NCBI GenBank assembly: GCA_946965045.2
Contig: OX337233.1
Location: 1,922,001-1,986,000 of the forward strand
From: Epithemia pelagica
Taxonomy: Eukaryota; Protista; Bacillariophyta
Length of the DNA stretch: 64,000 bases
Direction: 5' to 3'
Program-made: the position numbers and the translations under genes
Shown here: positions 18,538 through 45,845 of the stretch, piece by piece
Position numbering within the stretch: position 1 is the stretch's first letter
Layout of the letters: every line of letters starts with the position of its first letter
Notes under the pieces: model-generated
Seen by the model: only the letters and a program-made list of their open reading frames with translations
Databases searched by the model: none
Told to the model about the DNA's origin: nothing

Positions 18538-19229
18538 ATGTCTGTATCTTCCGCCGTTCGAATCGCGTCAATGAAGACGTCTGCACTACGAATGTATACC
18601 ATTGGTTGCAGTATGGCGCAGCAACCTCTTGGACCCCTGGCATTTCACAGTGGCGCCATGTCGTCGTTTTCGGAAAAGACCTCAACGACATTTGGTTCGC
18701 GCCATTTTTCTTCCACCACTACCGGTGCGACGACGACAACGGCTGCGGAGGAAAGCGCTCTCATTGGATTGAACAATTTGACCGAATCCGTGGCAGCATC
18801 GCACCCAGATATTTCCAAATCCAAAATCAAAGCCATTTTACGAAGCACGTCATTGGAAATTGTCAAGGTACGTCGGTCGAACTACTTGTAGTTCTTTTGT
18901 ACTGTGTTGTGACACGAGTACGGTACCGGATATGAATCTCACCCCTGTTGGAATTTGTCTGTTTTATCATTCCTTGTTTTCTTCTGGACTTGAAATAGGC
19001 CGTTTCCGATGGAAAAACTGTCCGATGGCCCAAGTTGGGAACATGGTCGGTACGGACGCAGAAAGCTCGTGACTTTACTAATCCCCAAAATCCTGAAGGT
19101 CCGAAAGTGTCCAAACCGGACAAACAAGTTGTGAAGTTCAAGACCCCAGCGCCTATCAAGGCCATTGTCGCCGGAGAACGTTCGATTGATGAAGTGTTTA
19201 ATCCGCCGCCGAAATCAAAAACTGAGTAG
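18538..19229 (+). CDS. HU/IHF-like DNA-binding protein 1 with a mitochondrial-type presequence; exons 18538-18867 and 18999-19229 (186 aa)
   Basis: Spliced product: LNNLTESVAASHPDISKSKIKAILRSTSLEIVK|AVSDGKTVRWPKLGTWSVRTQKARDFTNPQNPEGPKVSKPDKQVVKFKTPAPIKAIV. Intron GTACGT...ATAG. The presequence ends RHFSS. Confidence 0.88.
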
Positions 19230-20518
19230 GGAAACATACATGCCATATTGGATCGCGAGCTATTTTGATCTTGGTTGAACGCCTTGTCATTCAAAATCGA
19301 GAATGATTTACTTCAACAAGATTGTATCCGACAAAGCCTTTCAAGTCACAAAACGATCATACCTATTCGCACGAACCACAACTAGCAGCATTTCCTCAAC
19401 ACTCAAGCCAGTCATAGTACTTTTAGTATCATATCTCGAGTTCGTCATTACTAGGAGTATGGCCTTGTTGTCTGGAAAACATCTATGAGTCAGCGATCAA
19501 CAATTATGCAGCTTAAATGTTCAGGAGCAAGAGCTCATCATATGGACTCCGTAGCAACAGTGACAGATTCATTCACTCTCATTATCCTTCCTACCTACTA
19601 TCCGATAGGTCTCCAAAGTCTTTTTACTCATCTATTTCTACCACTCCTACAGACTAAACTATCTAAAGGAGGGGTTCACAATCCATAATCCTGTAAGATC
19701 GTACCATTTCTTTATCATGTTCAACCTTTGCTCGGTCCACTTGCAAACCCTAGCAGAAACTGCTCTCAAGCGATCCATCGGCAGAATAGTCAATATTTTA
19801 AACAAGAATGTACCGCTACCATCTTGCAATTTGCAATGTATCGAAGTTTCGCGTCACGGCGACCACAGCTTCTCCGCCGCAGCTTTACAAGGTCACCGGA
19901 GTTTCAAACGACGAAGTCAAAGGATGAGTATGGGGCACTTCTTATTGGCAGTCTTCTAGGAAGTCAATTCCACGATCCTTAGCTGTGTTTGCCATGAAAC
20001 GAGAGGAAGCAGTGACGAATGTGCGAGAGTTCCCATTTTGTGACGCGGCCACCTACCAACCTAGCCAAAAATGGCAGGCGGTGACAAGTGTGAAGGATGT
20101 GTCTTGTTCTCGCGAACATCATCTCGGCGGACGCGCATAACGTTATCCAGATGTCGTTTTGGTCTTGAGGGATCAAGACTGATAAGAATCAATTATTGCC
20201 CTCGACATTATTGGTCGCTGTATTCCTACCCGTTATAAATGTCTCCCGGTCGCTTGGCGCACACAAAATGGTTGTGTCGTTTGACTCTCACAAAATTTCC
20301 CCGGATTCTTGCATATTCGACAAAAGGCAATCCCTTCTTCAAGAATACTCGTGCTTGCTTACAGGATCAAGTTCGGCAAGGATGCTCCATCATAAGCGGA
20401 CACATTTCGAGTTCTTAGCATCTTCCGACAAGTTGTTTTCCTGGCTTGCGGCACTACGTGACAACAACAACAGACCAACTCAACGAATAGCACTGTGCTA
20501 CTTGATACTGTTGATACA

Positions 20519-21094
20519 ATGAAGTTCACATGCAACCTGATCATACTGCTGACCTACCTAATCTCAGCTGCTTCCGCAGTAAGATTTGAGTACTCAAGAA
20601 ACTTGGTCGAGGTCGAGAAAAAGCACAAGGACTCCAAGGATACAAAGAGAGCCAAGAAATTGAAGAAAGATAAAGAGGACTACGATGACATGTCCATGTC
20701 CTTTTCAATGCCACATAAAGGGAAAAAAGACGGAAACGATGGAAAGAAGGCATCCAAGTCGCCTTCATACTACAGTCCGACAGGAAAGAAAGGAAAGAAG
20801 GACGACAATGACATGGATATGGATATGTCAATGTCGATGCCCGCTAAAGGCAAGGGTGATTACTCCAAAGGAAAAAAGAATGACAAGAGTAGCAAAAGTT
20901 CAGAAGGAAAGGGAAAAGGAAAAGGTGACTATACACCAAGTCCCTCGAAGGGCTCAGTACCGTCGAAAGGAAAGGGAAAAGGTAAAGGTAAAGGAGACTA
21001 TACATCAAGTCCTTCTAAGGGCTCCGTACCATCAAAAGGAATGGGCAAAGGTAAAGGAAAAGGAGATTCCAAAGGATCGACCCGTCGGTGGTAG
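20519..21094 (+). CDS. Secreted Lys/Ser/Gly-rich low-complexity protein (silaffin/cingulin-like composition)
   Basis: Signal peptide MKFTCNLIILLTYLISAASA; MSMSFSM and MDMDMSMSM motifs; KSSK and KGKG; tandem GKGKGKGDYT(P/S)SPSKGSVPSK. Confidence 0.75.
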   Translation: MKFTCNLIILLTYLISAASAVRFEYSRNLVEVEKKHKDSKDTKRAKKLKKDKEDYDDMSMSFSMPHKGKKDGNDGKKASKSPSYYSPTGKKGKKDDNDMDMDMSMSMPAKGKGDYSKGKKNDKSSKSSEGKGKGKGDYTPSPSKGSVPSKGKGKGKGKGDYTSSPSKGSVPSKGMGKGKGKGDSKGSTRRW

Positions 21095-21818
21095 TAAACG
21101 AAAATGAGAATGGAAGACAACTCGACGTTGTTCCTACCGAGAATGATACAAACCGTCACCTCTCCCAAAACCGTTGTATACAAGTCCCCCAGATTATTTT
21201 TATGTTTTGTTTGAAAGCACGCAAAAAGGACAAAATGAACCGCAGCTGTCACCAAGCTTATGGTGTTTGTTTCCATTTGTTGCTTCTCGTCCTATACAAT
21301 AGCACTTCTATTTAGAGCTCACTGCCACATATTGTCACGTCAATGGAGAGACGGAAGATGAAGAGAGGATGGCTAGGATTGAACGGAGTATTGTTGACAG
21401 AACAATAGGTAAACTAGTGGAAGCGACTACTGTGCATCTATTTCTCTTGCTGTAATCCAAAATGGCAATGTCATCTAGGCCGCGTCGAGAACGCGGGGGT
21501 TCCTGCGTAGTCTCTCGGTAATGCGAAGAATAGAGCAACCCCGAAAAAACTTGCCCTCAAGATATTATTCAACTAGTTGACTGTATTACATATAATATGA
21601 TGCGTCGAACTTGAATGGTGCGTAGCATGTACGCGAGTTGCAAAGTAAAAAAATTGGCTCCTTTGCGATTTGAGCCAGAGCACAATTTAAGGGGTCGAAA
21701 ATGCGTCTTTCGTTTAAATTTGATCTCTGGTACATGCAAATGACTACATGCATCAACCGATTAAGTCCTTCGTTGTGCGTGGGGATTACATGCTCCCATC
21801 GGCTGTCTTTATCTTTCT

Positions 21819-24800
21819 TCATCGCTTCCATTTTCGGCGTTTCCGTGTCTTACTGTTTCGTTCCCCATTGCCCGTTTTCTTCTGCTTATCCCCCATCCCA
21901 AAGATACGTTTGAATTCCTCCCAATCAACAGTACCTGTATCATCCAAGTCCAAGGCATCAAGAATATCCTTGATATCTTGCTCTGTATAGGTTGGATCGA
22001 AATCTTTGAGAAGTGAGCTAATTTCGTTCAATTCGATTTTACCAGTCTTCCCAGTACCCACAAAATCAAAGGCATCGCGGAGGGCCGCTTCTGTTTTCGG
22101 AAAGCTTTGACCAGACTTGGCACAAAAAGCTTTTTGAAATTCACGACGTAAGCAAATTTCCCGAATGCTCTCTTTGAAGGAAGGATGGGAATCCAACAAT
22201 TTGTAAAAGTCTCGCGCTTTCATTACAAACACTTTGCATTCATCCGCTACGCATTTGGCATCAACATTACGCTTCCGGCCAAAGACAAAGGAATGCTCAC
22301 CCGTCATTTCACCCTTTCCGACATAAATAATGTCTTGGTCACCAGTAGTTAGTACAACCTGGCCTTCGTCGACCAAAAATAAAGTGTTACCCTCCTCGCC
22401 CTTTCGAAAGAGATAATCTCCCTTCTTATAGAGTCTCTCTTCCATGTTCTTCTGAAGCTGCAAAAGCATCTTGGCGCGCTGTCGCTTTCGCGCCTTGTCC
22501 TTTTCACGCAAATTCAGTTTCACACCTACCAAGAGGAAAAAGAAATGAAACAGATTGGGTGAGTGACGAGTTCATGTCGAACCCCATTAGAACAGACAAA
22601 ACGATGAATCGACCACAAGACAAGCTTTCTTTCGTACCATGATCTGTTGCAATATATTTCTCAAAGTACTCGCGACTAATTTCAATAGCATGAATAGGCG
22701 TGACACACTTGATGGAGGCCGATCGAATTTGATTGGGATTCAAGAGGGCGCCTTCTCCAAAAAATTCTCCCGATTGTCGTTGCGCACGGTAGCCGTCCTT
22801 GGTGAAAATTTCAATCGTGCCCGAATTCAAAAAGAACATGGAGTGACCTGCCTCGCCTTCTCGGTATATCATATGACCCTTGGGGAAGTACTTGTTGTGC
22901 ATGTGTTCGGATAAAATGTCAGAGAACCCCGACAGCGACAAATCACCAACGCCACCCAAGGCACTTTCGTCTTGTTGTCCTTGATCTCCCACTAGTTTCC
23001 GTAATTCCTTGGCCGGAATGTACCCTCGATGATCGGGATCGAACATTTGAAAGGATCGTTCAATTAGGGATGTTCGTTTGGCGACTGAATTGTCAACAAT
23101 AGCCGCCGTGCCGGGACCTCCCTTACCCGTGCCACCCGCCGCATCACCATTGACACTATCCGGAACGACCGGCTCGTCTGCCGAAAACAACTGCGTCGAG
23201 GATGCCGTGGACGATACAGAGGCCGCAGCTGCCTTCTTTTTGGGGGTTCGCGCCGCCGTGGTATCGTCGCCACCATCATTGATATTGTGTGCGCCCATAC
23301 TCACAGCTACCATACCCGCAAAGGCCTTGGCTTGCAAGGAGGTTTGAAAGGCTCGATAGGCCGACAAACGCTTGTCGGAATCTTGCATTTTCTGGGTACG
23401 TGCCGTTTCGCCGCGTACCCAGGGGTTTTCCAACAATTCCTGGGCCGTCACACGATTCATGGGATCCCATTGCAACAACAATTCAATCACTTTTACCGCA
23501 TCCGCAGACAAGTGCGCCGTCAAGGGCGAATTGCCCAGTGGAGGATTGTGTCCCGATACAATGGCTTGTTCAATTTCCTCGTCTGTGGACGTTCCAGACA
23601 AATCAAACGGATGAACCGCTGTCAACAGAATATACAAAATGACTCCCAACGCCCACATGTCAAAGGACGGATCCAAGACAGACGCTGGTCCCGGTGGTGA
23701 TACAGCATTGGCAGGGGATGGTTGTCGTTGTTGTTGCGCTTTGCGTTCCTTCTTGAGCTTGTCCACAAGTTGCTTGCGCTTCAGTACTTCGGGCGAACTG
23801 TAAGCCGGTGTCAAGGCGGTTCCACGTGTGCTGCCATTGCTGGCCTCATCTTGGTAAGAGACCGAAGAAGAAGCCGATGCGGATGCGGATCCATTCGATG
23901 CGGACTGTTTGGGTTTGCTCCGTCCCCACGCCAGAGATACAAGGGAGGACAAGTGTCCGGTTGTTTGGGGTTCGGCTGGATCGGCCACGGGTCGTATTTG
24001 GGCACAGCCAAAGTCCACCACCTTGACGACAGCCGCCGCCTTTTCGCGGGTGGACAACATGAGATTTTCTGGCTTCAAATCGCCATGGACGACACCGAGT
24101 CCATGCATAAAATTCAGCGCACTGGCCACTTCGCGGACCAGCCGCGCGGCATCGGCTTCACTGTAGGGACCCTGTTCGCACAAGTGATGAAACAATTCGC
24201 CTCCAGCAATCAAATCCAACACCAAATAATAATGACCATCGTCACTGTCAAAGGCGGCTTGCAAACCGCAGATATTGGGATGTCCGCCGTGATCCCGCAA
24301 TTCCAACAGGACCTGCATTTCATTTTGAAAAACGACTTGATCGGTGCACGATTTGGTTATCTTTTTGATCGCCACAGCTTCCCCCGTGGCACGGTTGGTG
24401 CCGGAATAGACGGCACCAAAGGTTCCCTCGCCCAAGGGACGACGCCAATTCACCTTGAATTTGCTCTCGAGTGTGACACCCTTTTCACTGGCCTCGGCCA
24501 ATTGACCCGCCACGGTAGCACCGCGACGGCGCGCCAAACTGCGATTCCGAGGCTGCCCTGGGGGTGGCGAGGAGGGTGTGGGTGAAGGAGACACGGACGA
24601 GGAGGAAGAAACGCCGGCTTCGGAAGAGGCTGCTCCAAACATGTTGCTCGTGGCTCCTGCTTCGGCTGCTTCCATGGAAGTGGTTAATACTTTCCGAGGA
24701 TGATAAAAGACACTCGAACACAAGGCGGTTAACGTGGAAGGATCCACCAAAAGGCCTTGCTGTTGCTTGTTGTTGTGATGGAGGGCGGCACGAGAATGGT

Positions 24801-25662
24801 TGGGTGTGATCCAGCCATAGTAAAGTGCATAGTTGGGATAGGAATAGGGTTGTGAAGGATGGGTGGTAAGCCTTCCACTGATCAAGGACCAAGAGGAGGA
24901 ACATGCTGCCGAAAACTGTGGCAATGGCACTTGTTGCAAGACAGGTATTCTAGTGCGAGGCGATGGAACCAATTCAAGCTGAGGATTCGGTGCCGTTTCA
25001 CAATCGTCCTCCTCCGACAGGTCCAGTTGCTGCGTGAGGTATCGTTGTTGCTGTTGTTCATAGTGTTCATTCACAATCACGGCTGCTTGTATTAACAACA
25101 AGGCTCCAAATCCTATCGCAGGTATACTCGGACCAGCAGTACTTCCACTGCTGCTACTTGCCATGGCCGCAACGCCAGATCCTATCGAACTTCTTCTTCT
25201 CCGACTCGAAAATGTTCGAGCTGCTGCCACTACCGATTTTCGTGGTTGAGATCGTTTGTGGAAACTCGTGGAAGTCACTCGTTGTTGTTGTTGTGAAGCA
25301 GATTTTGTGGTAGATCTCCTACTGGAGGACGAATGATAGCATCGTTGTTGCTGTTGTTGTTGTGAATGTAGAGATTGCGACGCATGGGAGGTGGATGTTG
25401 GAAACGCCAATCTCGATGGTTGTGAATGATAGTGTTGTTGGTGTTGTTGTTGTTGAAGTACTGGGGAAAGTAGATTGATATCGGAAAAAGAGGAACTTCC
25501 CGCACTCATTGCTCTCCTATCCAAACTGGAAGCACCAGATTGCTCATGATGGTGGTTGTTTTTCATGGGGCGTCGACCACTCGTATTGCTCATGGTGGTG
25601 GTGGTGGCCATTTGTTTCTTCCGACCCAATGAGGTGTACCACGAAAAGAGTGGGTGATTCAT
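21819..25662 (-). CDS. CAMK-like Ser/Thr kinase with an EF-hand, two cNMP-binding domains and C-terminal EF-hands; exons 25662-22638 and 22525-21819
   Basis: GEGTFGAV, VAIKK, HGDLKPEN, DFG, AYSSPE, DMWALGVILY; DPDHRGYIPAKE; IYREGE...FFGEGAL; LFRKGE...MTGEHSF; DDTGTVDWEEF. Intron 22526-22637 joins H-G|VKLNLRE in frame. Confidence 0.93.
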
Positions 25663-26720: not shown

Positions 26721-28469
26721 TTGATTCCTTCCATATATCATTTGTTGTTTGGTGGGAGTACCTTTCTTTCGTGGAGCGTGGAGCACGACACAATACCGGT
26801 TTCTCCTTCCTCCAAACGTTTTTCTGGATTTGGAAACTACCACGGAGGCACGAATCCGCCGGCGCCTCGACATCCATATCCTGTTTCTTCCTCTTCACCA
26901 TCCATCTCTCTCAAGGAAGAACGTTTCTCTCCATTGCAAAACGTAACAATGGAGCATTATCATCACTCTTGTTCTACCAGAACAACTCTTCCACATCAAA
27001 AAGAAGAGGGAAAGGACGGGTCGCATTCACCATTGACTCCTTCCCACCACACCCAGTGCTCCTCCTTCCCTCATTCTACCCCTCCTCCTTATTATCACCA
27101 CCACCAAAACAATCACCAAGATACTCAGAGCGAATATGACGAGGAAGAGGATGATGGAGACACAGCTCTAGTCATTGCCTTGGAAACCATGAGTCTATGG
27201 AGTGTATGGGTGGCTTCCACAGTTTGGACATGGCTCGTCCAGCATCTATCCGTCCGCATGCCTCGGTTGGAGTCCTTCTTCTTGTACCAACGATTGTTCC
27301 AGCAGCGGCTCCAATCATGTCAAGACGACAACGATGCTGCCACTAATAGCAACGAGGAGAAGGAAGAATGGTACGACGTTTCCACAACGGCAGCGTGTCT
27401 GGTGGAACGGAAGAAGGTTCATCCTGTGTATTATGTTTCTTCTTCTTCGACCATGTCTCCACCCCTTCGTTCCATTCTCAAAACGACAACCTTCCCATCC
27501 AAGTTTTTGGACGAAGAGACAGATGATACATATTCGGACGATGATACATCCTTTTCGTCTACCACCAGCAGTCAGTCGGAACTTTTGCAAGTTTCCGATC
27601 ATGTTACCGATCCGGACCACGTTGTTTCCTCTTCCTCTCTGATAGTCCCACAAGAACATGACTATGATCCTTCGCAGCAACAACAACCACAAGGACAACG
27701 CAAGGTTCGCTTTGCCGCTTGCAACAGACTGACGGAACGGTCCAAGTGTCCCCCACCCATTTGGCATTTCTATCCAGATTTGCGCAATGACGAACTGTGG
27801 TATACATGTCGAGAGTTGGCCACTATGCGACGACAAGTCCTCTTGTTGCATGCTCGCCAGATTATTGCGCAATCATCGGCCACATCCTCGTTATCTTCGT
27901 CATCTTCGTCATCTTCGTCGTCGTCATCTACAGTTCCCCAGTGGCGTCGAACGCAATGGTGGATTTCGCTCTCGTATTTTCACAATCAGTTGAGACGACA
28001 ATCGTCACAACAATCCTTGGACGGCATGCCACAACAACTATCCGAAACCATTCCTCCGCCCATGCTCCAGGATGACCAACGAACCAAGAATATGCGTTCC
28101 AAATTGACATGGGCCTATGTACAAACACCGGAATTGATTGGTATGGAACGAATGTTACTCGATTTGCTCATGGAAGTGATTGCCCAAAATCAACAACAGC
28201 AATCGCCACAACGCGATGGAACAACAACCGACGACTCGATACAAGAATCAAGTACGAATACTCGTACAGCCGTCTTACAGTATCGGCAGTACCTTGCGGA
28301 ATACCACGGCACGGAGAATTGCATTCCTATGGATCGAATGGAACAAGATCAACGAGTGGCCGACTATCAAGAACGACTCAGTCAACCGCATTGTCAATTT
28401 GCACATGAATTGGCCATGGCGCAAGCTCATGCCTTGCAAATTTCTTTGATGCAAGAAGAAGAGGACTAA
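26721..28469 (+). CDS. Uncharacterised low-complexity protein with an RVxF (PP1-docking-like) motif; true start uncertain (possibly 26946)
   Basis: 582-aa ORF; RKVRF at ~27699 followed by ELWYTCRELATMR. Confidence 0.6.
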   Translation: MIPSIYHLLFGGSTFLSWSVEHDTIPVSPSSKRFSGFGNYHGGTNPPAPRHPYPVSSSSPSISLKEERFSPLQNVTMEHYHHSCSTRTTLPHQKEEGKDGSHSPLTPSHHTQCSSFPHSTPPPYYHHHQNNHQDTQSEYDEEEDDGDTALVIALETMSLWSVWVASTVWTWLVQHLSVRMPRLESFFLYQRLFQQRLQSCQDDNDAATNSNEEKEEWYDVSTTAACLVERKKVHPVYYVSSSSTMSPPLRSILKTTTFPSKFLDEETDDTYSDDDTSFSSTTSSQSELLQVSDHVTDPDHVVSSSSLIVPQEHDYDPSQQQQPQGQRKVRFAACNRLTERSKCPPPIWHFYPDLRNDELWYTCRELATMRRQVLLLHARQIIAQSSATSSLSSSSSSSSSSSSTVPQWRRTQWWISLSYFHNQLRRQSSQQSLDGMPQQLSETIPPPMLQDDQRTKNMRSKLTWAYVQTPELIGMERMLLDLLMEVIAQNQQQQSPQRDGTTTDDSIQESSTNTRTAVLQYRQYLAEYHGTENCIPMDRMEQDQRVADYQERLSQPHCQFAHELAMAQAHALQISLMQEEED

Positions 28470-28940
28470 ACACAAGCAAGCTGTCACGCCAACGAACGAC
28501 ATGTCGATTCACTGTTTGACACTTGTGTGTGCAGTGGCAAACTTTGTCTTTCGAGAACTCTCTCTCGGACCCAACGACATGAATAGATTCACAGTGCAGC
28601 ATGTTTTCCGGAACGGCGAGCACGCTCTCTGTGATACAAGAAACATTGATATGGAGATGTATTCATCTTTCTCTGTCCCTCTAAATTATCATTCTAGAAA
28701 GCATTCCCATTTTTAGAAACAAATCGATCTGGACATAGGAATAGTGCAAGTTGTATCTACCTGCTGCATTGCGATGCGTTCCAAGTGGCTTCCCTTCTCT
28801 CATACAAAATGCACCCTTACTGCTTCGATGTTGCCCCCAGGTACCTACATTTTTTGATGAAGAATAATCAATAGATCAATGATGAAACAATGTTTGCTGA
28901 AGCATTTCCTCCGTGCGAGCGACCCCATCATATTCGGCGC

Positions 28941-34015: not shown

Positions 34016-35097
34016 TCAGCGAGACTGGTCCAGGGCTTCCTGATCCTCGTCTGTTTCCTCATAGAATTCATCGTTTTCTTCGATTGTTTCTTCGAGTAGT
34101 TTTTCTTCCCCCCACAAGAGGGATTGGTCATATGCCGTATCCTCATCCGCACCATATCGAACTTGCTCCTTGAGTTTGCGAGACGCTGTGAAGCGGGCAA
34201 TTCGAGTGGCAGGCAACATCCTTCGTTTGCCCGACTGCCAGTTTTGCAAGTCGACGGCTTCATGTTCTTTTCGGGTATGAACTTTCCATTTTCCTAGTCG
34301 ATACAAGGCGACTGTACGGCCTTCTTTCAATGCCTAACACCAAGCGTTCGAGGCCACAATTATCAAGTGTAACATTTGAGTGAGTTCTGTCTCCCTGAAC
34401 ATATGCAGTAGAGTTACCTGTCACGGTAATTCAAATTCAAACTTACATCTTGAATCTGTTTTGTCATGGTTTGAACAATTTGTTTCATTTTAATTTTCGT
34501 AATATCATGGTTCGCCGCCACAGAATCAATCAAATCTTTGGTCGTACAAACATTATCACTGTTTCCTTTTCGTCGTCGTTCTCCTCCAGCACGAGAAGAT
34601 GCCGTTGATAACCATTCGTCATTGACAGGTGACAAGAATGGATCCGAGGTAATGCTCTTATTGTTGTCGTTGTTTTTCGGGGATTCATACCAGTTCCATT
34701 CTGCTTCCTGTGGTTCCAGAGGTGGAGGTTTTGGCCGAAGAGGACCACGACGATCCCCGTCTTGCGAACTGAAATATCTTGCCTTCTCAAAAATGCGGTT
34801 TCGACAAGACCAGAACCCGAGGCTTCTATGATGATGGATTGGATCGGTGACTGCGGGAGTGTTGCGTCGCGCCAAAATTGAAATTTGATTTGAAAGATAG
34901 TTATCAAGCTTGTCAGAGGATCCACCGCTCCTCTTTGTTGCCAAGAAGCACAACATCCTGTTATCTTTTGTTTCAGCCGATGCAACGGAACCTTGGTGTG
35001 GGAATTTCATGTGAAGGCTCTTCCAGTTGTTCGGAAACCGAGCCCTTGTCTTGAATGCCGCCCATAGCTTTGAAGCTTGACGACAAAGATGGATCAT
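34016..35097 (-). CDS. HU/IHF-like DNA-binding protein 2 with a mitochondrial-type presequence and acidic tail; exons 35097-34447 and 34333-34016 (322 aa)
   Basis: Spliced product: TTKDLIDSVAANHDITKIKMKQIVQTMTKQIQD|ALKEGRTVALYRLGKWKVHTRKEHEAVDLQ...MLPATRIARFTASRKLKEQV. Intron GTAAGT...TTAG. KARYFSS upstream. Confidence 0.85.
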
Positions 35098-35511: not shown

Positions 35512-38500
35512 CTATCGTAGCGACCCCAGACCCAACTCTCCATCAACATCAAAATCCTCTTCTACGATCATCAGATCATCATCTTCATCCTCTTCCTCTT
35601 CACTTGTGTCTTCGTCGTCTGTCTGTTCCTGGTTGCTCTCCTTCGCGTCGTCGTCCTCGTCGTCGTCGAATTGCATATTGGATTCTTTCATAATCTCCAT
35701 AATCTTCTCATCCAATTCTTCCAATATCGCTGTGCGATCGTCCATGTAAATATCTGTACAGTCTTTCATTTCTTGTCGAAAGAAGTTCAATTTCTGGATT
35801 AATTCTTTCCGTTCTTCATAGGTCTTTGCTTTTATTGCAGTCTTCTCACTGTCTCGTAAGGGTGCCAAGGTCCACTCCAATTGGGTCAACAAGCCTGGTC
35901 CATACTTGGCCTCGTGTTCATCCGCCATTCGGGGGTAGCCCATTTCTCGCAAGACATGGGCGTTGTCACGTCGACCCTGTTCATACCAATAATCCTTGAC
36001 ATAGTCCCAATTGTGCCACTCGCGCCACCAAAGTTTGGGATCCCCACCGGTATCATAAAAGGGACCGTCGGCAAGGATTTGTTCGTGAATTGCCAAAGGA
36101 ATGTCACGAATGGCATAGTCGGGGTGTCCCATGCCCGTCAATCGCAACATCTCATTGTCCATTTCGATTTCGTCGTCGGGGTCTAACGGCAAGGCCAGGG
36201 TAGGAAACCAAACGAAATCAATCATGCGAAGCAAACTAACCTTTTCGGGATGATAGGCTTCCAAGAAATTTTGCAATTCCCGAATCCTCTTCACAGCTTG
36301 ACCGATTTCGTATCCAGCCAAGGCCTTTGGCCATGGATCCTCATCGGGCATGACAAAATTTTCATAGACAAACATGTCTCCTCTCACCAAGTAATAGGCG
36401 TACATGGCACACATGGCCTTTTCAAAGGGAACATCAATAAAATACCTTTCGTCGCCCCAATCGAAACCCAACGCATCGAGTTTGGCCTTGCGTTCTTCTA
36501 AATGTCGAATTTCCAAACTTCCATCCTGAATGCGTCGTGCGATATGTCCTAATTGCATCCCCGCCAAGTGCTCGGGCCATTCATGTTTCTCTGGTCGCGA
36601 AGAACTTTCTGTCATAGACGCCATGGTCGTGACAAGGTTTGACGATGATTCCAAATCACTATCAAGGTCTGACAGTTCAGAAGGATCCAATCGGGTACCA
36701 GAGGGGTCCGGGTTTTGTTGCAATCTTTGAATCTCGGCCGCAATCAAGTCTTGACTTTGATCAAACTCTCCGGCTTCTTCAAATTGGGCAATGGCTTGTG
36801 CGGCACGAGCCGAAGCATCCGGATCAAAGGCTGACGCCGGAGATGCCAAGCCCGATCGTAAGAACGTATCGTCCCCATCCATGCCATATTCATCCAGAAA
36901 TCCGGTACGGAGAGACATGGACGGTGGGGGAATGACAAAGTCAAAGTTCATGGTAAGATTGGCAAAGTTACCATAAAAAGATTGATACAAGGTGAGCGCT
37001 TCCAAGACGTCGTCAAAGACGAAGTCGTCACCAAAATCATCATTGAACCATGGAACTTCTTTTTCGCGTTTGCCTTTAATGACACGGCCCTTTCCCTCTT
37101 CAATAATACCCACTTCTTGAGCCCGAACTCGGGCCTCAGACAAGGATTCTGCCAAGGTACGGGGAGGGGCATAAGTTCCCTCATCCAGATTCTGCCGTTG
37201 CTCCATTTGCTTTTGTTGCAACCGTGCCAATTCCTGTAAGTCACCGCCTCCCTCAAATCCCCAGGTAATGGGAGCTTGTCGATCCTTGTTTATGCTTGAT
37301 AGGGCCCCTTGTGTACTGGACCGGGCTCCTGTGCCATCCTTCTCAAGAAAATCAAAGGACTTATCAAAGAGAGACGACAATTCATCATCTTCATCATCGT
37401 CTTCACCTCCCAATCCTCCAAACATTGCATCATCGGCGGAACCAGCCATTTTCATTCTCATGGCATCTTGAGGAGAGTAGGGATCCAACATTTGGTCACT
37501 CAGAGTCGATTTGTTGGTACTGCCGCTTGGTCGACCGGCTCGTCGTTGCTCGGTTCGGGGTGGATTCCAAACAAAACCCAAATCATCCAACAATTGCCGT
37601 CGTTCGGGGTGTTTGTTAACAAAAGTACCCTGCGATCGAATGGCATTGACACGGGCCCCCAATCGAAAGCCCCACAAATCAGGTTGATCCGTCCACGATT
37701 CGGGTACGATAAAAGGTTGAGGCACCAGCAGGTCACCATATACTTGCTTGTATGTGGACAAGGCTCGGTATACCTTTTCAAACCGAACGTCATTCGCCGA
37801 GGGAACTCCACCGTCATCAGTCATCATCACGGACGGAAACGACGAGGGAATCACCGTTTCCTCCTTTGGTGTGCTTTTGGTTCCTTCAGCTGCTTGGATT
37901 GGATCTTGATTGAGTAATGACTCTGACGAGATATCCGTCGGTTCTGGTGTCTCGGCCATTGACGGCGTACTGCTCGTACTGCTGGTTTCGGTGGTCGGTG
38001 CTTGTAGTAAGGCGATGAATTTACGTCGCCATTCTGGTGGAGATTGCAACAAGAGTTCCGCTCCGTTGGTCAAGAGAGCATCCATTTCCTGACCCAGGGG
38101 TAGGCCCTGAACCGTTGTCGGCCATTCCGGTGAAGTCGATGGAACCACAAAATCCAAGGGAACTGTCGTTCGACCATTATACAATTCGGCATAGTTCGAC
38201 AAGGCGGTATAAATTCGTGAGACTCGACGTGTCAATGCATCGCCGTCGTTTTCGGCATCTTCTTTCATAGTCTGCTGGTCAGAAGCGGCGACTCCCATGC
38301 TGCTGGCAGCTTGCTTGACCTCCACTGCTCGTTTGGAAGTCGCTGTGGTACCCTTGACTGTTACCGTCTTGGCTGCCTTTTTCTTTTTGGCTTTGACCGA
38401 GACCACTACCGTTTTGGTGGTCGACGCTGCCTTTTTCTTCTTCTTGCTTTTACTTGCAGTGCTGCTGGTTTGCCAGACAAATCCGGCTTGCTGCAACCAC

Positions 38501-39075
38501 GCTTGCCGAGCCGGTTGGTTGGCAATGTATTTGCCTGTAGTCCGAATGGCCTGAACGACCAGTCCCAGTCGCATCCCCCAGGCTGACTTAGGCCAGGGCT
38601 GGAGATTGGGTACCACAAATCGTTGTGGAACTTGCAAATTGCCATAGGCAGCCTTGTAAATGGTCAAGGCCGAGACAATGGCCTTCCATTCTCCCGCATC
38701 CGTACTCGTGCCGGCTTTCTTCTTGGTGCCATCATTGGAGGGGGACGACCACAACCGTGTTGTTGTTGTCGTCGTTGGTCGCCGCACATGTCTCAAAATG
38801 GAGCTAGACTTTCTGCGGTGGTGATTCGAAGAAACGGAAGAAGAAGACGAGGGAAAAAAGGATAATTGCGGCAAGGGCCGTTGCTGTGATTGTCGCCTCA
38901 CAGGATTGTTTTGCAAATAAGGCAAAGACTCAAAGGCTAGGCATCCCACTGATGACCCTGATGGAGAGCCTTCCATCAACCACCCCAGTAGAGCTAGTCC
39001 ACCGAGAAGGACCCATGAATGATGATACTGCCATTGTCTGTTTGGTGTTCCTTGCCGTCTTCGAGACCAGTCCAT
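35512..39075 (-). CDS. Plastid-targeted protein with about five helicase-associated (HA) domain repeats
   Basis: Signal peptide ending GCLA|F followed by an S/T/R-rich transit peptide. Five repeats of the form ALxxYKxxYGxLxVPxxFxVP...WP...GxxLG. Likely ATG is 39075; the ORF track extends to 39297. Confidence 0.8.
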   Translation of the reverse strand: MDWSRRRQGTPNRQWQYHHSWVLLGGLALLGWLMEGSPSGSSVGCLAFESLPYLQNNPVRRQSQQRPLPQLSFFPSSSSSVSSNHHRRKSSSILRHVRRPTTTTTTRLWSSPSNDGTKKKAGTSTDAGEWKAIVSALTIYKAAYGNLQVPQRFVVPNLQPWPKSAWGMRLGLVVQAIRTTGKYIANQPARQAWLQQAGFVWQTSSTASKSKKKKKAASTTKTVVVSVKAKKKKAAKTVTVKGTTATSKRAVEVKQAASSMGVAASDQQTMKEDAENDGDALTRRVSRIYTALSNYAELYNGRTTVPLDFVVPSTSPEWPTTVQGLPLGQEMDALLTNGAELLLQSPPEWRRKFIALLQAPTTETSSTSSTPSMAETPEPTDISSESLLNQDPIQAAEGTKSTPKEETVIPSSFPSVMMTDDGGVPSANDVRFEKVYRALSTYKQVYGDLLVPQPFIVPESWTDQPDLWGFRLGARVNAIRSQGTFVNKHPERRQLLDDLGFVWNPPRTEQRRAGRPSGSTNKSTLSDQMLDPYSPQDAMRMKMAGSADDAMFGGLGGEDDDEDDELSSLFDKSFDFLEKDGTGARSSTQGALSSINKDRQAPITWGFEGGGDLQELARLQQKQMEQRQNLDEGTYAPPRTLAESLSEARVRAQEVGIIEEGKGRVIKGKREKEVPWFNDDFGDDFVFDDVLEALTLYQSFYGNFANLTMNFDFVIPPPSMSLRTGFLDEYGMDGDDTFLRSGLASPASAFDPDASARAAQAIAQFEEAGEFDQSQDLIAAEIQRLQQNPDPSGTRLDPSELSDLDSDLESSSNLVTTMASMTESSSRPEKHEWPEHLAGMQLGHIARRIQDGSLEIRHLEERKAKLDALGFDWGDERYFIDVPFEKAMCAMYAYYLVRGDMFVYENFVMPDEDPWPKALAGYEIGQAVKRIRELQNFLEAYHPEKVSLLRMIDFVWFPTLALPLDPDDEIEMDNEMLRLTGMGHPDYAIRDIPLAIHEQILADGPFYDTGGDPKLWWREWHNWDYVKDYWYEQGRRDNAHVLREMGYPRMADEHEAKYGPGLLTQLEWTLAPLRDSEKTAIKAKTYEERKELIQKLNFFRQEMKDCTDIYMDDRTAILEELDEKIMEIMKESNMQFDDDEDDDAKESNQEQTDDEDTSEEEEDEDDDLMIVEEDFDVDGELGLGSLR

Positions 39076-39847
39076 ACTTCGACAAGAATTTGATAAGGGA
39101 AAACCATAGATGCGGATCGTTTCCTCTTGTGGTGATGGTGGTAGATCGGATAGCTTTGCCACATGAGCAGATTGTTGTCGAGAGTGACTTATGAGTATTC
39201 GTTTGGTACTGGAAGAGGAGGAAGTGTTCGAAATAACCCTGGAAGATCCTCTTTCCTTTCGCTTTTCGTTCTCCTTGCAAGTAGTCAGGTTGCCCATTTT
39301 TCTGGCTTCGGGTTTGAGCTCTATCTTGGAAGAAACGCGTGCTGTCGCTTAAAAGCACATTGAGCTGGAATAGACACACGTTCTCGGTTTTCTTCTCGAT
39401 CTCTGCCGTTCTGTTGAGGGAGGTCAATCGCACCGAGATTCAATTGTGATAGCAAGCGAGATTTGCTTTTCTGTTGTTCTCTTTTCGATGGCTTTTGGAT
39501 TGCTGAGAGAGAGAGAGATGTGATGTGTCGCTGTGATGGGTTGGATGGAGCCGGTCTATCATGCAGTGTCTTTTTCTGCATCTCTCTTTTTGTGCGGTCA
39601 TGTAGCCTGGTCCTCCCGTCGTCCGTGCACCGAAGATGTGTTCTCGTCCAATGAACGGAAGTACGGGTGACGCAAAGACGCTCGGAAGGCTACTTGTATG
39701 TCAACTACACCTAGCTAGGAGTAGCAGCAAGTATTGTAGGAGTCGTAGCAGCTTCTACAATGAATTGAATCGCCTATTGTAAGGCGAAGGACGGCTGAGT
39801 TCAGTATTCAGTATTCAGTAGTTACTCCTAGCTCTGACCCGCCGTGA

Positions 39848-40347
39848 GAGCATGCGCAGCCGTTGGAATAGAATAGGAACAAATCGGCAAATCTGTGCTA
39901 TTCCATGAAAATGGCTCTGCAGCGCGGGGAACAAACCTGGAACAAATTTAAATCTGAGTTATTCTTCCTTGTTTTTGGCACAGATACCACGAATCTGCGC
40001 CCTGTTTTCTCTAGCAGAAAGTTGGAGCATACGAGTCTTGGAACATGAGTCACAAGACATGCTATCCATATGTACAATCTGAATCTACATTATTATAATA
40101 CCAATGCACGCGCGTCAGCAACGTGACAGGATGACGGGCGTGACTTCAAACCGCTACACGCAAGCCAATGTCGCGGGCGCGCCAAAACTTCTATTTTTTT
40201 GTTCCATTTTTGCTTCATTTTTGTTTTTTACGGCTGCACAGATTTGATCAAACGTACGAAAAACGACGCAAGACGTCCATTATGGGAATAAGACTGCGTG
40301 AGTCACGCACATTTGTTCTAATTTTGTTCCAACGGCTGCGCATGCTC
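39848..40347. mobile_element. PIF/Harbinger-type MITE (500 bp)
   Basis: TIR GAGCATGCGCAGCCGTTGGAA (21 bp perfect, ~37 bp imperfect); 3-bp TSD TGA at 39845-39847 and 40348-40350. An empty-site copy lies at ~40366-40386. Confidence 0.9.
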
Positions 40348-40513
40348 TGACCGTGTTACTTGTAGAGCTCTGACCCGCCGTGACCGTAACTTGTCGACGC
40401 GAGCTGATCGGTGCGCATGCGACATGAAGCAACATAGCGTAGGTAGTCCCAGCCCCCTCTAGGAGCAGTAGCTTAGGTGAGATAGGTGTATCTCCATTCA
40501 CACCAAGAAGGGA

Positions 40514-40971
40514 TGGAACGGCTAAGTTCAATGATAACGCAACACCTCAAAACGCAATGCCATTACTGATTACTGATTACTGGCTCGTCGGGCGCAAGCG
40601 CCCGATTCGACCCTTTGTCTCCAAGTTGCAAGGGGAACGGCTAATAAGATCAATGATAACGCAACACCTCAAAACGCAATGCCATTACGGATTACTGATT
40701 ACTGGCTCGTCGGGCGCAAGCGCCCTCTTCGCCCGATTCGACCCTTTGTCTCCAAGTTGCAAGGGGAACGGCTAATAAGATCAATGATAACGCAACACCT
40801 CAAAACGCAATGCCATTACGGATTACTGATTACTGGCTCGTCGGGCGCAAGCGCCCTCTTCGCCCGATTCGACCCTTTGTCTCCAAGTTGCAAGGTGAAC
40901 GGCTAATAAGATCAATGATAACGCAACACCTCAAAACGCAATGCCATTACGGATTACTGATTACTGGCTCG
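40514..40971 (+). repeat. Tandem array of a 131-bp unit (first unit 122 bp); the last unit continues at 42805-42858 and 44007-44014
   Basis: The repeated ORF starts at 40557, 40679, 40810 and 40941 show the periodicity. Each unit contains ATTAC(T/G)G repeats and a GGGCGC-AA-GCGCCC hairpin. Confidence 0.97.
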
Positions 40972-42804
40972 CCACATCTCAAGTCTCCCCACGACCACCG
41001 TCAACATCTGTTCCTGTTCATGTTGCTCAGTCCGGACCGGCCCTTGTCTTGTCACCATGTCGCCCCCAACTCATTCCGCAGAGTCCGCCTCCTCCACAAA
41101 GCTTCTCCGCTTACGTACAAACTCTGAAACAATGGGATCAGCATCTTCTCGCCAAAGTAGACCTCATCCAAACCGTGGACGAAATACAACAATACTTTCA
41201 GTCCTCGACAGTTCGTCTTTTTCTCTGCAGTGATGGCTCTGCCGCTTTGTTCAAAGGAAAATTTGGTTGTATCTGCAGTACTGATACTGGACAACGGCTT
41301 TTCAAACTACATGGACCTGCACTAGGATTCCGCACCTCGTCATTTTGCTCTGAAAGCTACGGAATGCTTGCTCTCTTCCGGACCGTGCTACATCTTACTA
41401 CCCATTACCGACTGAGTTCCCCCCCCCCCCCCCCCCCCCATTGCATTTTCTACACCGACTCTCAGAGTTTGATCAAGACAGTGGAGAAACGATTAGAGTG
41501 GACATACGACTTCCCGTATTCTACCATAGAAGCTGATTGGGATATCCAACAATCGATTACTACTTCCTTACAGCAATTTCCTGAGATTCCACAATTTCTC
41601 CACGTCAGAGGACACCAAGACCGTTTTCGTGCATACTCTACGTTACCTCTTACCGCTCAGCTGAATGTCGACGCAGACCGCCTGGCCAATTTGTACGACT
41701 ATCCTCCTGATATTTCTCCGATCCGAGTTCCGTTGATTACTGGTTGTTGCGCTTTACTTCACACCCCTCAAGGTACAGTCAATTCCAATTATCGGACGAC
41801 CTTGTGCTATTTAGCAACTTGGCAACCGTTGCGACACTATCTTTGCAATAAGCATGACTGGGATATTGATACTTTCTAGTCTGTGGATTGGACTTCTCAC
41901 GGCCGTGCTCTCCGAGCTTCTTTCCATCGCCGCCAATTTCATAGCAAGTTTCTTCATGACTGGCTCCCCCTCGGCTACCTACGATCCCGTTACGCTGTGT
42001 ACTACTCTGACTCGTGCCCGCTATGTACTCCACCTGTTATCGAGACGCGTACCCACTTTCTCCGCTGCCCACATCGCCCTTGGAAAGGTCCCCTCTTCGA
42101 CGATCTTGACAAATTTTGGCGCCTCCAATATCTCGACCCCTTCCTCCAATTATTGTAGGTGGAAATTTTACAGTCATGGCTCGGCAATGTCTCACCGACG
42201 TTTCCTACTCTTTCCCCATCATACCAACTTCTGATTACTCAACAACGTCGAATCGGATTAGATCAACTTTTCTTTGGACGCTTTTCTACTCAATGGCAAG
42301 TTCTTCAAGACTCATATCTCTCTTCAACAAACCAGAAATCTCGTTCGGTATCGGGCTCCCACTTTGTCACTGGTTCTATAGAGGTTCTATGGACACATGT
42401 CCACGCCCTTTGGCTCAAGCGGAACCATAATCTACACGGCGATACCCCACAAACTATCGAAGCTGCGTCCTACGCTCAAGCCCAACCCGAAGTTATTGCT
42501 CTTTACGAGTACCGCCACCAACTTCCCCCCTCTGACCGTGACATCTTTTATTCCTCTACCACCGCCCATTTCGAGGCGGAAACGACTGCATTCTCACTCC
42601 GCTCTTGGATCAACACCTGGCGTCCTGTTATTCTCAGGACTGCTCCACTCTCTTAACCGACTTTCTTCTTTTCACCCACCAGTACTCCCATTTCCATTCC
42701 TTGTTTAGTCCTTGCTTCACATTCTGTGTGGAGCCGGGCGCATCGGTCGACGTTACCCTAGCGGGTGCGCGCGGCAGCGTTAAAATAGATTGTGTCTTTT
42801 TTTT
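40972..42804 (+). mobile_element. 5'-truncated RNase H-bearing non-LTR retrotransposon (Ambal-like)
   Basis: RNase H motifs LCSDGS, SESYG, YTDSQ, HVRGHQD, NVDADRLA; zinc finger CPLC...ETRTHFLRC; IG.DQLFFGR and LWLKRN. One frame with two TAG stops (41877, 42156). TSD TTACTGGCTCG at 40961-40971 and 42805-42815; T10 tail. Confidence 0.9.
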
Positions 42805-42858
42805 TTACTGGCTCGTCGGGCGCAAGCGCCCTCCTCGCCCGATTCGACCCTTTGTCTC

Positions 42859-44006
42859 ATTCGCCATTAGAGGTCCGCAGAAACAAGGACAGCAGACAGA
42901 CTAAACCTTAACTCCACTGTGTGAAGTCTACCACCCGTCTCACCTGCCACGCGTCTAAGTAATCCTTCCATTGGAAGGGCCGGCGTCAAAATGACAGTTG
43001 GTGGTTGGCGTCACGATTCAAATTTCGGATGCTCTCATCTCGTCACAAAAAATCTTGACATCGAACCATGAAACATGAACCATGAAGCGAACGAATCGAA
43101 GCGACCTGATGCAGCCTTCTGGCGGGTTTCTTTCTAACACGCTGTTTGTTAGAAGTAGCTTGCGTCCTTCCCATATAGGATAAATATGATCACTTGTTAT
43201 CCATTTAATCCCTCCCATTGTCCCTGTTGATGGTTGGTCTTTCAACTTTGTCTCGCTCAAGTAAAGGACAGTGGTAATCCGTCACAACTCTTTTTTGCTA
43301 TATTTTTAGAGATGGTTGATTGCTTGTTGGCCACTTTCTTCTCTTCTGTAGCACTCTCTTCATTTTGTTAGTCTCATTCATTGTTCCTGTCGACGACTGA
43401 ATGCCTACTTGGTTGTGTCGGATACACAAACACCGTACAAATAAGCCGTCCTTCATCTTGCCATTACTCCAACTATTCAATATTATCAAGATCAGTCTAG
43501 TCCAAGTCTCTATGGATGACAGAGTTGACAGGATTTGCTCAGAGCCATGGTTTGGGTGTATTTTCGAGGGTGTTGCTGAGGGTCATGGTTGTTGAATGGG
43601 GACATAAGCTGCAACGAAGCAAGAAATGCTCTGGAAGATTAAAAGGTCCACTATTATCCTGCATGGGAAAGAAACAAGCTAGTCCTAACAAGCGGCATGC
43701 TAGAAAGAAACTCAAAAGAATACTGCTTCAGGTGTCAGGTGTCAGGTCGCGACGATTCGTTTGCTTCATGTTTCAATGTTCGATGTCAAGATTTTTTGTG
43801 ACGAGATACGAGATGAGAGATGAGAGCATCCCAAATTTCAAATTTGAATCGTGACGCCAACCACCAACTGTCATTTCGACGCCGGCCCTTCCAATGGAAG
43901 GATTACTTAGAAGCGTGGCAGGTGAGACGGGCGGTAGACTTCACACAGTAGAGTTAAGGTTTAGTCTGTCTGCTGTCCTTGTTTCTGCGGACCTCTAATG
44001 GCGAAT
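42859..44006. mobile_element. Long-TIR (fold-back) element C, 1148 bp, termini ATTCGCCATTA, no TSD
   Basis: 42859-43109 and 43742-44006 are inverted repeats of ~250 bp. Flanks GTCTC | TTGCAAGG, versus GTCTC-CAAG-TTGCAAGG in the intact array units. Confidence 0.93.
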
Positions 44007-44675
44007 TTGCAAGGCGACGAGTACCGTTACGACTGCCGTCCTCTTTTCTTGATACGAGTACACCATCATTCGACTGCTTGTAAAAGTCATTTGTTGTTGG
44101 TTGGGAAAATCAGGATATTTGTATATTACAATAGATATATTTTTGAATTGTACAGTTAATCGACTTATGACCCTGCGCGATTTACAGTGAACAAAATGAC
44201 CCGAAGACATCATAAAATATGCACCTCTGTATATTCTGATATGTTATTTCTATCATCACTAACGTTCAAATCCCTGTTCAAATTGTCATTGTACTTCCCG
44301 ATCCATTGTCAGATGACTATGTCCGTTTTGCAGTCATTGTTGAAATTTCCACCCCAGACCCCATCTAAACGATCTACCCGACATCGTTCATACTGAACTC
44401 AGTCGAACATCTTTTCACGGAGGAAGGAGTAGATCTTGAAGTTTCGAGTATCGACAGCGATTATCTCATGAATTCGTCTATTCTATTCATATAGGCGCTG
44501 TTGCGGGCAGGAGATGTCCACAAAAACTTCACACCGTCTACAAAGATAGATCCGAGTATTGGTACCTTGTATGGAACCCATCGCGTTGCCACCTTATGAT
44601 CAACCAATATATAACGAAGGACGTGTTCTGGCTCTTTTCCTCCTCTGACCTATACCGAATCTCGACGATTTTCGC

Positions 44676-45845
44676 TCACTTGTCTTTGTTCTGCTCTTCC
44701 GTGGAGGCAACGGAGTTCTTTGTATTTGTAGAGTTGGCGTTTGTCGTTGTGGTAGCTATCGTTTGGTTCTGATTTTCATTATGTGCGGTTGTCTTGTTGG
44801 CACGAGCCCCGGCTCCAATTTCCCTTCGCAAGGGTTGCACCAGTCGACATCTCACCACGTCACGGGCAGGGATCCATTGTTTGGGGTGGTTGGCGGATGG
44901 CTTCGTGTCGTCGTTGGGACTCAGTGTTGGACTGGTAGTCCGACTACGAACCATGGGCTTAAACCAATGTCCAGCACGTTGGCCAATCCAAAATCGGGCC
45001 ACACCCGTCCATCGTACTGTTTGACCTTCCACCAAGGCCTACGGATGTGCAGGCATTTGTTCAAAAAAGAAAAATTGACACAAATGTACGATACATGCAA
45101 ACAAACGCAGTTTTAGAAGGACATATCCAGGAGATGCGCGATTGTGTTGAAACACTTGGTTCATACGTACTTGTCGTAGTTCGTCCATCCAAGCATGAAC
45201 AATACGTCGAGAGGCATAGAGAGGAATTCCATGCTGTTTTGACACGAATCGAATGATATGCGACAAGCGCAAGGTGCTCGTCACATCGCCGTCGGTCATC
45301 GGTTTTGGTGCGGACTCTTGTGTTGTCTTGGTCTGGTTCGCTGTATTTTGGACGCCCGTTTTACTCTTGGAGGTTTTGGTAGTGGTGGTGGTGGCTCTTT
45401 TTGGTTTGCTGCTGGTGGTTGTTTTTGTGCTGGTCTTGCCTGTCGTCTTGGAGGTGGTGGCGGTGGTTTTCTTCTTCATTGTCTTCGATGTCTTGCCGGT
45501 GGCCGGTGTCGACGTTGTAGGTGCGGTTGCTCGGGATGACAGTGTTCTGCTGGGGATTGCAACCGGAGTGGCAGTAGGTAATGACAGGAGAGGGTACACT
45601 GATATTGATATTGGGGTTGGAACATGTTGTGCTTGATCTGACCGGGGATAAATAATTCTAGATGATGACCATGGGTTTTGTTGAAGTAAAGATGTTACAA
45701 CACCGACTGGACGATGATGGCTGTAGTTATTCATTTGTCGTTGTATCATCCGTTCCTCACAACCCTTACGCAAAGAAAACGCAATCGATGATACAGCATG
45801 GGGCATCTTAGTATTCTTCATGAATCCAGCAGATATACTTATCAT
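44676..45845 (-). CDS. HU/IHF-like DNA-binding protein 3 with a Lys/Thr-rich extension; exons 45845-45171 and 45038-44676 (345 aa)
   Basis: Spliced product: LRLSHIIRFVSKQHGIPLYASRRIVHAWMDELRQ|ALVEGQTVRWTGVARFWIGQRAGHWFKP...KQWIPARDVVRCRLVQPLRREI. Intron GTACGT...GTAG. SRTLSS motif upstream. Confidence 0.75.

Follow-up and report, generated by a model that had tools for sequence, protein, structure and literature searches.

Gene models of the HU locus in Epithemia pelagica

The stretch of DNA analysed here (the window) comprises 64,000 nucleotides (nt) of the diatom Epithemia pelagica (assembly GCA_946965045.2, contig OX337233.1, positions 1,922,001-1,986,000 of the forward strand) and carries three genes, g1, g2 and g3, which almost certainly encode paralogues of the bacterial DNA-binding protein HU and share an intron at one position. 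A first-pass annotation of the window had quoted nine peptides from these genes and had claimed that each gene is split among open reading frames (ORFs) and rejoins through a single GT-AG intron. Six-frame translation located all nine peptides where they had been placed, and the gene models then rebuilt from them indeed joined two exons through one GT-AG intron each, yielding proteins of 186, 322 and 345 amino acids (aa) for g1, g2 and g3, respectively (Table 1).

The three proteins share only about 21-29% mutual identity. The extension following the leader of g2 is conserved, and the acidic C-terminal tail of g2 contains 19 Asp and Glu residues in 45 aa. The extension that precedes the HU domain of g3 contains 17 Lys and Arg and 43 Ser and Thr residues in 88 aa. 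Upstream of g1, the reading frame extends 123 nt back to an in-frame stop without passing an ATG, and in g2 an in-frame stop likewise precedes the first Met by 18 codons. A hidden Markov model (HMM) scan of the window revealed no further HU-like pieces beyond g1, g2 and g3.

Table 1. Window coordinates of the three HU genes with their exons and introns, and of the g3 transcript (UTR, untranslated region; a slash marks the presumed cleavage point in a leader motif).
Feature	Position	Strand	Description
g1	18538-19229	+	two exons, 186 aa
g1 exon 1	18538-18867	+	56-aa presequence-like leader to RHF/SS, T-rich linker, HU helices 1-2 to EIVK
g1 intron	18868-18998	+	131 nt, GTACGT..AG, phase 0
g1 exon 2	18999-19229	+	HU beta-sheet, arm KARDFTNPQNPEG (prolines kept), C-terminal helix, stop codon
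g2	35097-34016	-	two exons, 322 aa counted from first Met
g2 exon 1	34447-35097	-	leader to RYF/SS (residues 107-111), PPP..EWN.Y..ND.N extension, HU helices 1-2 to QIQD
g2 intron	34334-34446	-	113 nt, GTAAGT..AG, phase 0
g2 exon 2	34016-34333	-	HU beta-sheet, arm with DLQNWQSG, C-terminal helix, 45-aa acidic tail
g3	45845-44676	-	two exons, 345 aa
g3 exon 1	45171-45845	-	leader to RTL/SS (residues 100-104), 88-aa K/T-rich extension, HU helices 1-2 to ELRQ
g3 intron	45039-45170	-	132 nt, GTACGT..AG, phase 0
g3 exon 2	44676-45038	-	HU beta-sheet, arm tip with ~27 extra residues, C-terminal helix, N/T-rich tail
g3 transcript	44428-45913	-	5′ UTR of at least 68 nt, 3′ UTR of ~248 nt; run X5

g1 and g2 match bacterial HU profiles

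Exon 2 of g1 matched the Pfam profile Bac_DNA_binding (PF00216) with 33.1 bits (E 6.9e-8, profile positions 35-88) and exon 2 of g2 did so with 32.2 bits (E 1.3e-7, positions 35-89), both above the curated cut-off of 22.4 bits. The end of g2 exon 1 additionally gave a weak match to positions 2-34 of the same profile. A profile of g1 and g2 exon 2 was then run exhaustively against 1.84 billion representatives, which provided 106 single-domain bacterial HU sequences for a local HU profile. On this local profile, spliced g1 and spliced g2 reached 75.4 and 85.0 bits over about the whole profile length, scores of which the exon-2 share is somewhat favoured because the bacterial set was picked by its likeness to exon 2 of these two genes. 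Both matches ran ungapped across the exon junction, and the PF00216 result is independent of this selection bias. In comparison with Protein Data Bank (PDB) sequences, exon 2 of g1 gave weak matches, which were HU chains throughout.

The DNA-binding arm was compared via alignments at the DNA-contacting residues R55, R58, R61 and P63 of Escherichia coli HU. In that numbering, g1 has kept R58, N62 and P63, and carries a second N-P pair.

g3 is a likely and very divergent HU copy

Searches with g3 yielded neither a Pfam nor a PDB sequence match, so that the PF00216 match obtained for g1 and g2 does not extend to this copy, which is supported by profile methods instead. On the local HU profile, g3 scored 19.2 bits over positions 6-58, across the exon junction, with an additional collinear C-terminal piece. 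Alignment of its spliced domain to the HU alignment with hhalign gave a probability of 95.9% (E 5.5e-9, 89 columns). Moreover, its HMM score of 25.0 bits compared with a maximum of 9.4 bits among 2000 shuffled sequences and with -0.7 for the reversed sequence. Feature searches of the ESM Atlas returned HU families in 93 of 100 matches for exon 2 and in 63 of 100 for the last 50 residues of exon 1, although all scores were at most 0.83 and these matches therefore serve as leads only.

When exon 2 of g3 was modelled by AlphaFold2 with the HU alignment as input, the strands and C-terminal helix obtained predicted local distance difference test (pLDDT) scores of 91-97 (block values 85-97), and the insert of ~27 residues at the arm tip, which follows a conserved K-P pair, scores of about 61-64. 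Foldseek comparison of this model with the PDB placed HU, IHF, Hbb or the HU-like protein of African swine fever virus (ASFV) in all of the top 37 positions (E at least 0.017). The model covers exon 2 only and the HU input alignment biases its fold, making this test partly circular. Taken as a whole, the profile and model comparisons suggest that g3 is likely a very divergent member of the HU family with a lengthened arm.

The three genes share one intron site

The first-pass annotation had further claimed that the three introns are all phase 0 and occupy one aligned site. This proved to be the case, as they all fall between the same two columns, 34 and 35, of the Pfam HU profile, and share a single column in the local HU profile as well (EIVK/A in g1, QIQD/A in g2 and ELRQ/A in g3). 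The position can be read directly from g2, where the PF00216 match ends at 34 in exon 1 and starts at 35 in exon 2. The introns have a G+C content of 0.39-0.41, as compared to 0.48 for the window, and show no mutual sequence similarity (z at most 1.0), which fits an old duplication. The common site points to descent of the three copies from one intron-bearing eukaryotic gene. Such a single ancestor, as originally proposed for the whole set, has good support in the case of g1 and g2 and is a reasonable assumption for g3.

Read mapping covered g3 alone, chosen as the most doubtful copy. In run X5, which is RNA-like in that its depth falls to zero between genes, a contig of 1354 nt joined 45913-45170 to 45037-44428 and thereby exactly skipped the predicted intron of 132 nt. 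The skipped stretch has CT..AC ends on the plus strand, corresponding to a GT-AG intron on the minus strand. Among the DNA-like runs with continuous cover, a contig of run X2 retained the whole intron and one of run X3 at least its exon-2-proximal part. The X5 contig begins 68 nt upstream of the first ATG of g3 and passes an in-frame stop on its way, indicating that no hidden N-terminal extension is present there.

The DNA-like runs, which stem from the same organism, also revealed in-frame insertions of 9, 6 and 3 nt (at 44905, 45333 and 45412, respectively) in the low-complexity parts of g3, next to numerous substitutions. Such differences between alleles or strains leave the reading frame of g3 intact.

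Relatives in other diatoms

Among the best 150 matches of the exhaustive search, two eukaryote-like proteins were found. The first (P0001, with P0151 as a longer isoform) is HU1 of Epithemia clementina. The second (P0138) derives from transcriptome MMETSP1442, labelled Craspedosta(uros), and is a g1-like relative from Craspedostauros australis. HU1 of E. clementina contains a single intron of 185 nt at the same site as the window genes (after EITK, before SLVEDKKV). For Craspedostauros, a contig of 944 nt (L004, P0158) retains the intron after FMTQ and the transcript peptide P0138 reads through to TIVDGGTV, which indicates splicing at this site too. A search with P0001 returned only P0001 itself, and no eukaryotic HU cluster was found in the ESM Atlas. 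Exon 1 of g1 gave no match in a word-based protein search, in a collection that seems to lack the proteins of this genome.

In E. clementina, HU1 is followed by a gene of 229 aa, by a protein kinase gene that combines cyclic-nucleotide-binding and EF-hand domains, and by genes of 668 and 252 aa. The kinase corresponds to window 21819-25662, the 668-aa gene to window 26721-28469 (36% identity, E 9e-41) and the 252-aa gene, HU2, to g2 (49% identity over 69 residues by tblastn, E 2.7e-11). The order of HU1, the kinase, an unnamed gene of 582 aa in the window and 668 aa in E. clementina, and HU2 is kept, and both g1 and g2 have syntenic orthologs in E. clementina. HU2 (stretch L003 13222-14513, minus strand, JBGMNV010000285) is annotated as hypothetical and has no Pfam record, yet it scored 49.6 bits on the local HU profile. 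Its ORF extends 53 codons further upstream than the annotated start, and its intron, of 374 nt, again lies at the shared site (after DEIAK, before ALMEGRTV). HU2 ends in a poly-D tail matching the acidic tail of g2, and has kept the H-N-P of the arm that g2 has lost.

Some shared residues are specific to the subfamily. All six eukaryote sequences close helix 1 with a His, and in five of the six, including the three window copies, exon 2 opens with (D/E)G-x-TV. In a tree of four diatom and 106 bacterial HU sequences, g1, HU1 of E. clementina and g2 grouped together with a support of 33, with g3 on a long branch.

Leaders of the HU proteins

Hydropathy analysis (Kyte-Doolittle, windows of 11 residues) revealed no signal-peptide-like hydrophobic stretch in the N-termini of g1, g2 or g3. 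The highest window means in their leaders were 0.57-1.75, and the maximum was never N-terminal. Neither did the window copies contain an uncharged hydrophobic run of signal-peptide length, as looked for in a plastid bipartite leader, where an ASAFAP-type cleavage site comes after the signal peptide. No signal peptide was seen in the leaders of HU1 and HU2 of E. clementina or of the Craspedostauros protein either, which were judged by eye and left unscored. Nuclear-encoded proteins enter diatom plastids only via a signal peptide for the endoplasmic reticulum, and the lack of a signal-peptide core in these leaders thus makes canonical plastid import unlikely.

A check of leader composition showed the first acidic residue at position 46 in g1, 42 in g2 and 30 in g3, and at position 70 in HU1 of E. 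clementina, 60 in Craspedostauros and 57 in HU2 of E. clementina. In window copies and orthologs alike, the leaders are therefore acid-free over 29-69 residues, basic (isoelectric point 10.3-10.7) and rich in Ser and Thr. RHFSS occurs at residue 55 of g1, RYFSS at residue 107 of g2 and RTLSS at residue 100 of g3, while the orthologs carry RPFSS, RWSST and RWFHS. Sequence conservation starts at this R-x-(F/L/W)-S-type motif, and the sequence upstream of it is not conserved. Both properties that the first-pass annotation had ascribed to the N-termini, namely the lack of a signal peptide in any copy and a basic, hydroxylated composition ending in R-x-F/L-S-S, were hereby borne out. Arg at -3 or -2 is the classical pattern of the mitochondrial processing peptidase (R-x-F/Y/L, then S or A), and the motif resembles such an R-3/R-2 site. 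Mitochondrial targeting of g1, g2 and g3 is hence predicted as the best reading of these leaders, with moderate confidence.

Candidate mitochondrial nucleoid proteins

These data are compatible with a scenario, fairly probable in our view, in which g1, g2 and g3 are nuclear paralogues of the HU fold that are imported into the mitochondrial matrix and act there as nucleoid proteins. Within the bacterial HU/IHF fold of DNA-binding proteins, they would form a single subfamily specific to diatoms. Its ancestral eukaryotic gene would have acquired a phase-0 intron close to where helix 2 ends and would have duplicated afterwards. Duplication would have preceded the divergence of the sampled raphid pennate diatoms, a timing that holds for g1 and g2 and that we infer for g3. 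The proteins are built in three layers: a poorly conserved acid-free leader rich in Arg, Ser and Thr, the R-x-(F/L/W)-S-type motif, and an HU domain with copy-specific additions. With regard to the latter, g1 is near-canonical with its arm prolines kept, g2 is marked by its acidic C-terminal tail and the loss of the arm-tip proline, and g3 by its Lys/Thr-rich N-terminal extension and lengthened arm. After import into the matrix and presumed cleavage at the motif, they might work in the nucleoid as dimers that bind the mitochondrial DNA (mtDNA) without sequence specificity, bending and compacting it. Most of the DNA binding would probably be carried by g1 and g3, and g2 may be a modulating partner. 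A role in packaging mtDNA is plausible if the proteins are mitochondrial. The label IHF, which had been considered next to HU, was set aside, as no feature marks the copies as IHF rather than HU.

A number of observations weigh against this scenario. The presequence reading draws on composition and a short motif, and, as 70-90 residues separate this motif from the HU domain in g2 and g3, cleavage there would leave long extensions. The start of g2 is ambiguous, with Met codons at 35010 and 34956 as alternatives, and the 5′ UTR of g3 (45846-45913, minus strand) contains a pair of short upstream ORFs, a first one of 12 codons and a second of 6 codons that stops one base before the main ATG. RNA support for splicing and for the 5′ end is limited to g3 in this organism. 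The arm of g2 has kept R55 alone of the contact residues and carries L/W at the proline position; lacking the arm-tip proline and most arm arginines, g2 may not bend DNA like canonical HU. No ortholog of g3 was found in 33 kb of the E. clementina contig (by tblastn and six-frame HMM) or in other searches. Finally, the tree with bacterial HU gave no resolution and thus assigns the family to no alpha-proteobacterial, cyanobacterial or other bacterial source.

The same weighing has to include that both the K/T-rich extension of g3 and the acidic tail of g2 resemble nuclear chromatin proteins, because of which a nuclear interpretation keeps some probability. The proteins could be nuclear or cytosolic proteins of a chromatin or nucleic-acid-binding type, akin to the HU-like proteins that serve in the dinoflagellate nucleus (PMC5499826), and their N-terminal regions would then be uncleaved disordered tails. 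The KKK and KPKR stretches in the Lys/Thr-rich part of g3, the HMGB-like character of the g2 tail and the shortness of the R-x-F-S-S motif would suit such a function. However, acidic residues are lacking from the first 29-69 positions of all copies and orthologs, and this stretch is basic and hydroxylated even though its sequence is unconserved, as is typical of organellar leaders. Moreover, g1 and its orthologs lack a Lys-rich stretch of nuclear type in the leader, and conservation begins precisely at the processing-like motif. We therefore regard a nuclear or cytosolic function as unlikely.

Somewhat less likely still is that only g1, and perhaps g2, works in DNA packaging and that g3 is decaying or has acquired another function. 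The lack of Pfam and PDB sequence matches, the very long branch and odd composition, the arm insert of ~27 residues modelled with low confidence, and the failure to find an ortholog might all hint towards such a fate. Yet g3 is transcribed and correctly spliced, its ORF is intact over 345 codons, the insertions and deletions in the DNA-like runs are all multiples of three, and its HU core scores far above shuffled sequences. Least probable, and in our opinion improbable, is that the three are plastid nucleoid proteins with a signal peptide in an unrecognised upstream exon or with an unusual import route: such an origin would agree with the mainly plastid-type, signal-peptide-bearing eukaryotic HU that reached stramenopiles by secondary endosymbiosis (PMC5499826), with the counting of one Phaeodactylum Bac_DNA_binding gene as a cyanobacterial-type factor (PMC4827209) and with the restriction of RNA-supported 5′ ends to g3, but it is opposed by the absence of a signal-peptide-like stretch from all three copies (and, by unscored inspection, from the orthologs), by the g3 transcript contig, which contains no additional joint and reaches beyond an in-frame stop that precedes the first ATG, and by the in-frame stops found a short distance before the ORFs of g1 and g2.

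Returning to the mitochondrial reading, its broadest form would hold that diatom mtDNA is packaged by a dedicated three-member HU set forming mixed dimers, with no HMG-box protein involved, and that this set is old, vertically inherited and possibly present in wider stramenopiles, in parallel to an independent case in Acanthamoeba. This wider proposal is tentative and its probability clearly falls short of that of the narrower one.

Compaction of mtDNA is largely unknown outside animals, fungi and kinetoplastids, and in the literature searched nothing was reported for diatoms; in particular, we found no work on where HU resides in diatoms or on proteins of the diatom mitochondrial nucleoid. 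The diatom family, in which three diverged paralogues share an old intron and bear leaders of a non-plastid type, appears not to have been described before. g1, g2 and g3 represent concrete candidates that have clear gene models, orthologs in further diatoms and, in one case, a confirmed transcript, and through which the packaging of diatom mtDNA can be addressed by direct experiments.

Neighbouring genes, repeats and environmental matches

The kinase gene between g1 and g2 (21819-25662, minus strand) bears cyclic-nucleotide-binding and EF-hand domains and is read as two ORFs, which are probably joined by splicing. Two other genes lying between or beside the HU genes were not found in the E. 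clementina stretch that was fetched, namely one for a SUMO/ubiquitin-activating enzyme E1 subunit (28941-31433, minus strand; ThiF, UAE_UbL) and an ORF of 1261 aa that encodes helicase-associated (HA) domains (35512-39297, minus strand). An ORF of 199 aa (20495-21094, plus strand) sits between g1 and the kinase gene and encloses a tandem repeat of 69 bp (20906-21066, 2.3 copies, 85% alike). A second tandem repeat, with a unit of 131 bp (40523-40971, 3.5 copies, 96-99% alike), precedes a 312-aa ORF without Pfam match (40941-41879, plus strand) and overlaps its start.

Downstream of g3, at window ~43800-44400, contig depth amounted to ~11,800 in run X2 and 3,300 in run X3, as opposed to ~260 and 80 over g3, and many short variant contigs and loose ends were found. 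This rise in depth and these variants suggest a multi-copy repeat at this position.

In marine metatranscriptomes, a contig of 151 nt from 2025 (X6) matched 45707-45855, at the start of g3, with one mismatch, and 6% of the g1 stretch was present in another dataset (X1). The organism or a very close relative is therefore present in marine samples.

Comparison with known HU systems

Eukaryotic HU is known mainly as a plastid clade with signal peptides, which includes stramenopiles, next to rare late transfers such as that in Acanthamoeba (Burroughs et al., PMC5499826). In Phaeodactylum, a 2016 survey counted one Bac_DNA_binding gene, the product of which was not localised (PMC4827209). AcHupA of Acanthamoeba castellanii is part of the mitochondrial proteome; it was shown to bind DNA and to co-localise with mtDNA, and has been proposed as a stand-in for TFAM/Abf2 (PMC13632651, 2026). 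The background given in the first-pass annotation has to be amended in two respects: a mitochondrial HU is on record in Acanthamoeba (PMC13632651), and the HU of stramenopiles is described in surveys as plastid-type with a signal peptide (PMC5499826), a feature absent from the copies analysed here. Organellar HU, mitochondrial HU included, is a known kind of system; the principle is thus not new and the diatom set is not the first candidate for it.

Like the diatom proteins, AcHupA is a nuclear-encoded eukaryotic HU with a predicted leader before a single HU domain, and it is proposed to bind mtDNA. It differs in being described as a recent horizontal transfer specific to Acanthamoeba, for which localisation and DNA binding were established experimentally. 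The diatom set, in contrast, is three-member and intron-bearing, has representatives in E. pelagica, E. clementina and Craspedostauros, shows tails and arm changes, and is known from sequence alone. Should the diatom proteins prove to be mitochondrial, mitochondria would have acquired HU on at least two occasions, once in Acanthamoeba and once in diatoms.

The plastid and apicoplast proteins (HU of Cyanidioschyzon, HLP of Chlamydomonas, and HU of Toxoplasma and Plasmodium; PMC5499826) resemble what is proposed here as bacterial-type HU packaging organellar DNA. HU of secondary plastids is nuclear-encoded with a signal peptide plus transit peptide (PMC5499826), whereas g1, g2, g3 and their orthologs lack the signal peptide. 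A mitochondrial location of the latter would require revision of the view that HU in plastid-bearing eukaryotes is a plastid protein.

With regard to the copy-specific additions, the basic N-terminal extension of g3 calls to mind bacterial HU proteins with extended cores. In mycobacterial HupB and Deinococcus HU, the HU core gains affinity for DNA from a Lys-rich extension of low complexity. The g3 extension is likewise basic, but it is rich in both Thr and Lys and is located between the leader and the domain. For an acidic tail such as that of g2, we know of no usual bacterial counterpart. Through these copy-specific tails, the division of HU function between paralogues can be studied as a natural experiment. 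In having several paralogues of one fold in what may be one compartment, the diatom set finally resembles HU alpha/beta and IHF alpha/beta of E. coli, and this likeness makes mixed dimers possible; unlike in the E. coli proteins, pairing and any IHF-type sequence specificity are conjectural for the diatom copies, which are only about 21-29% identical.

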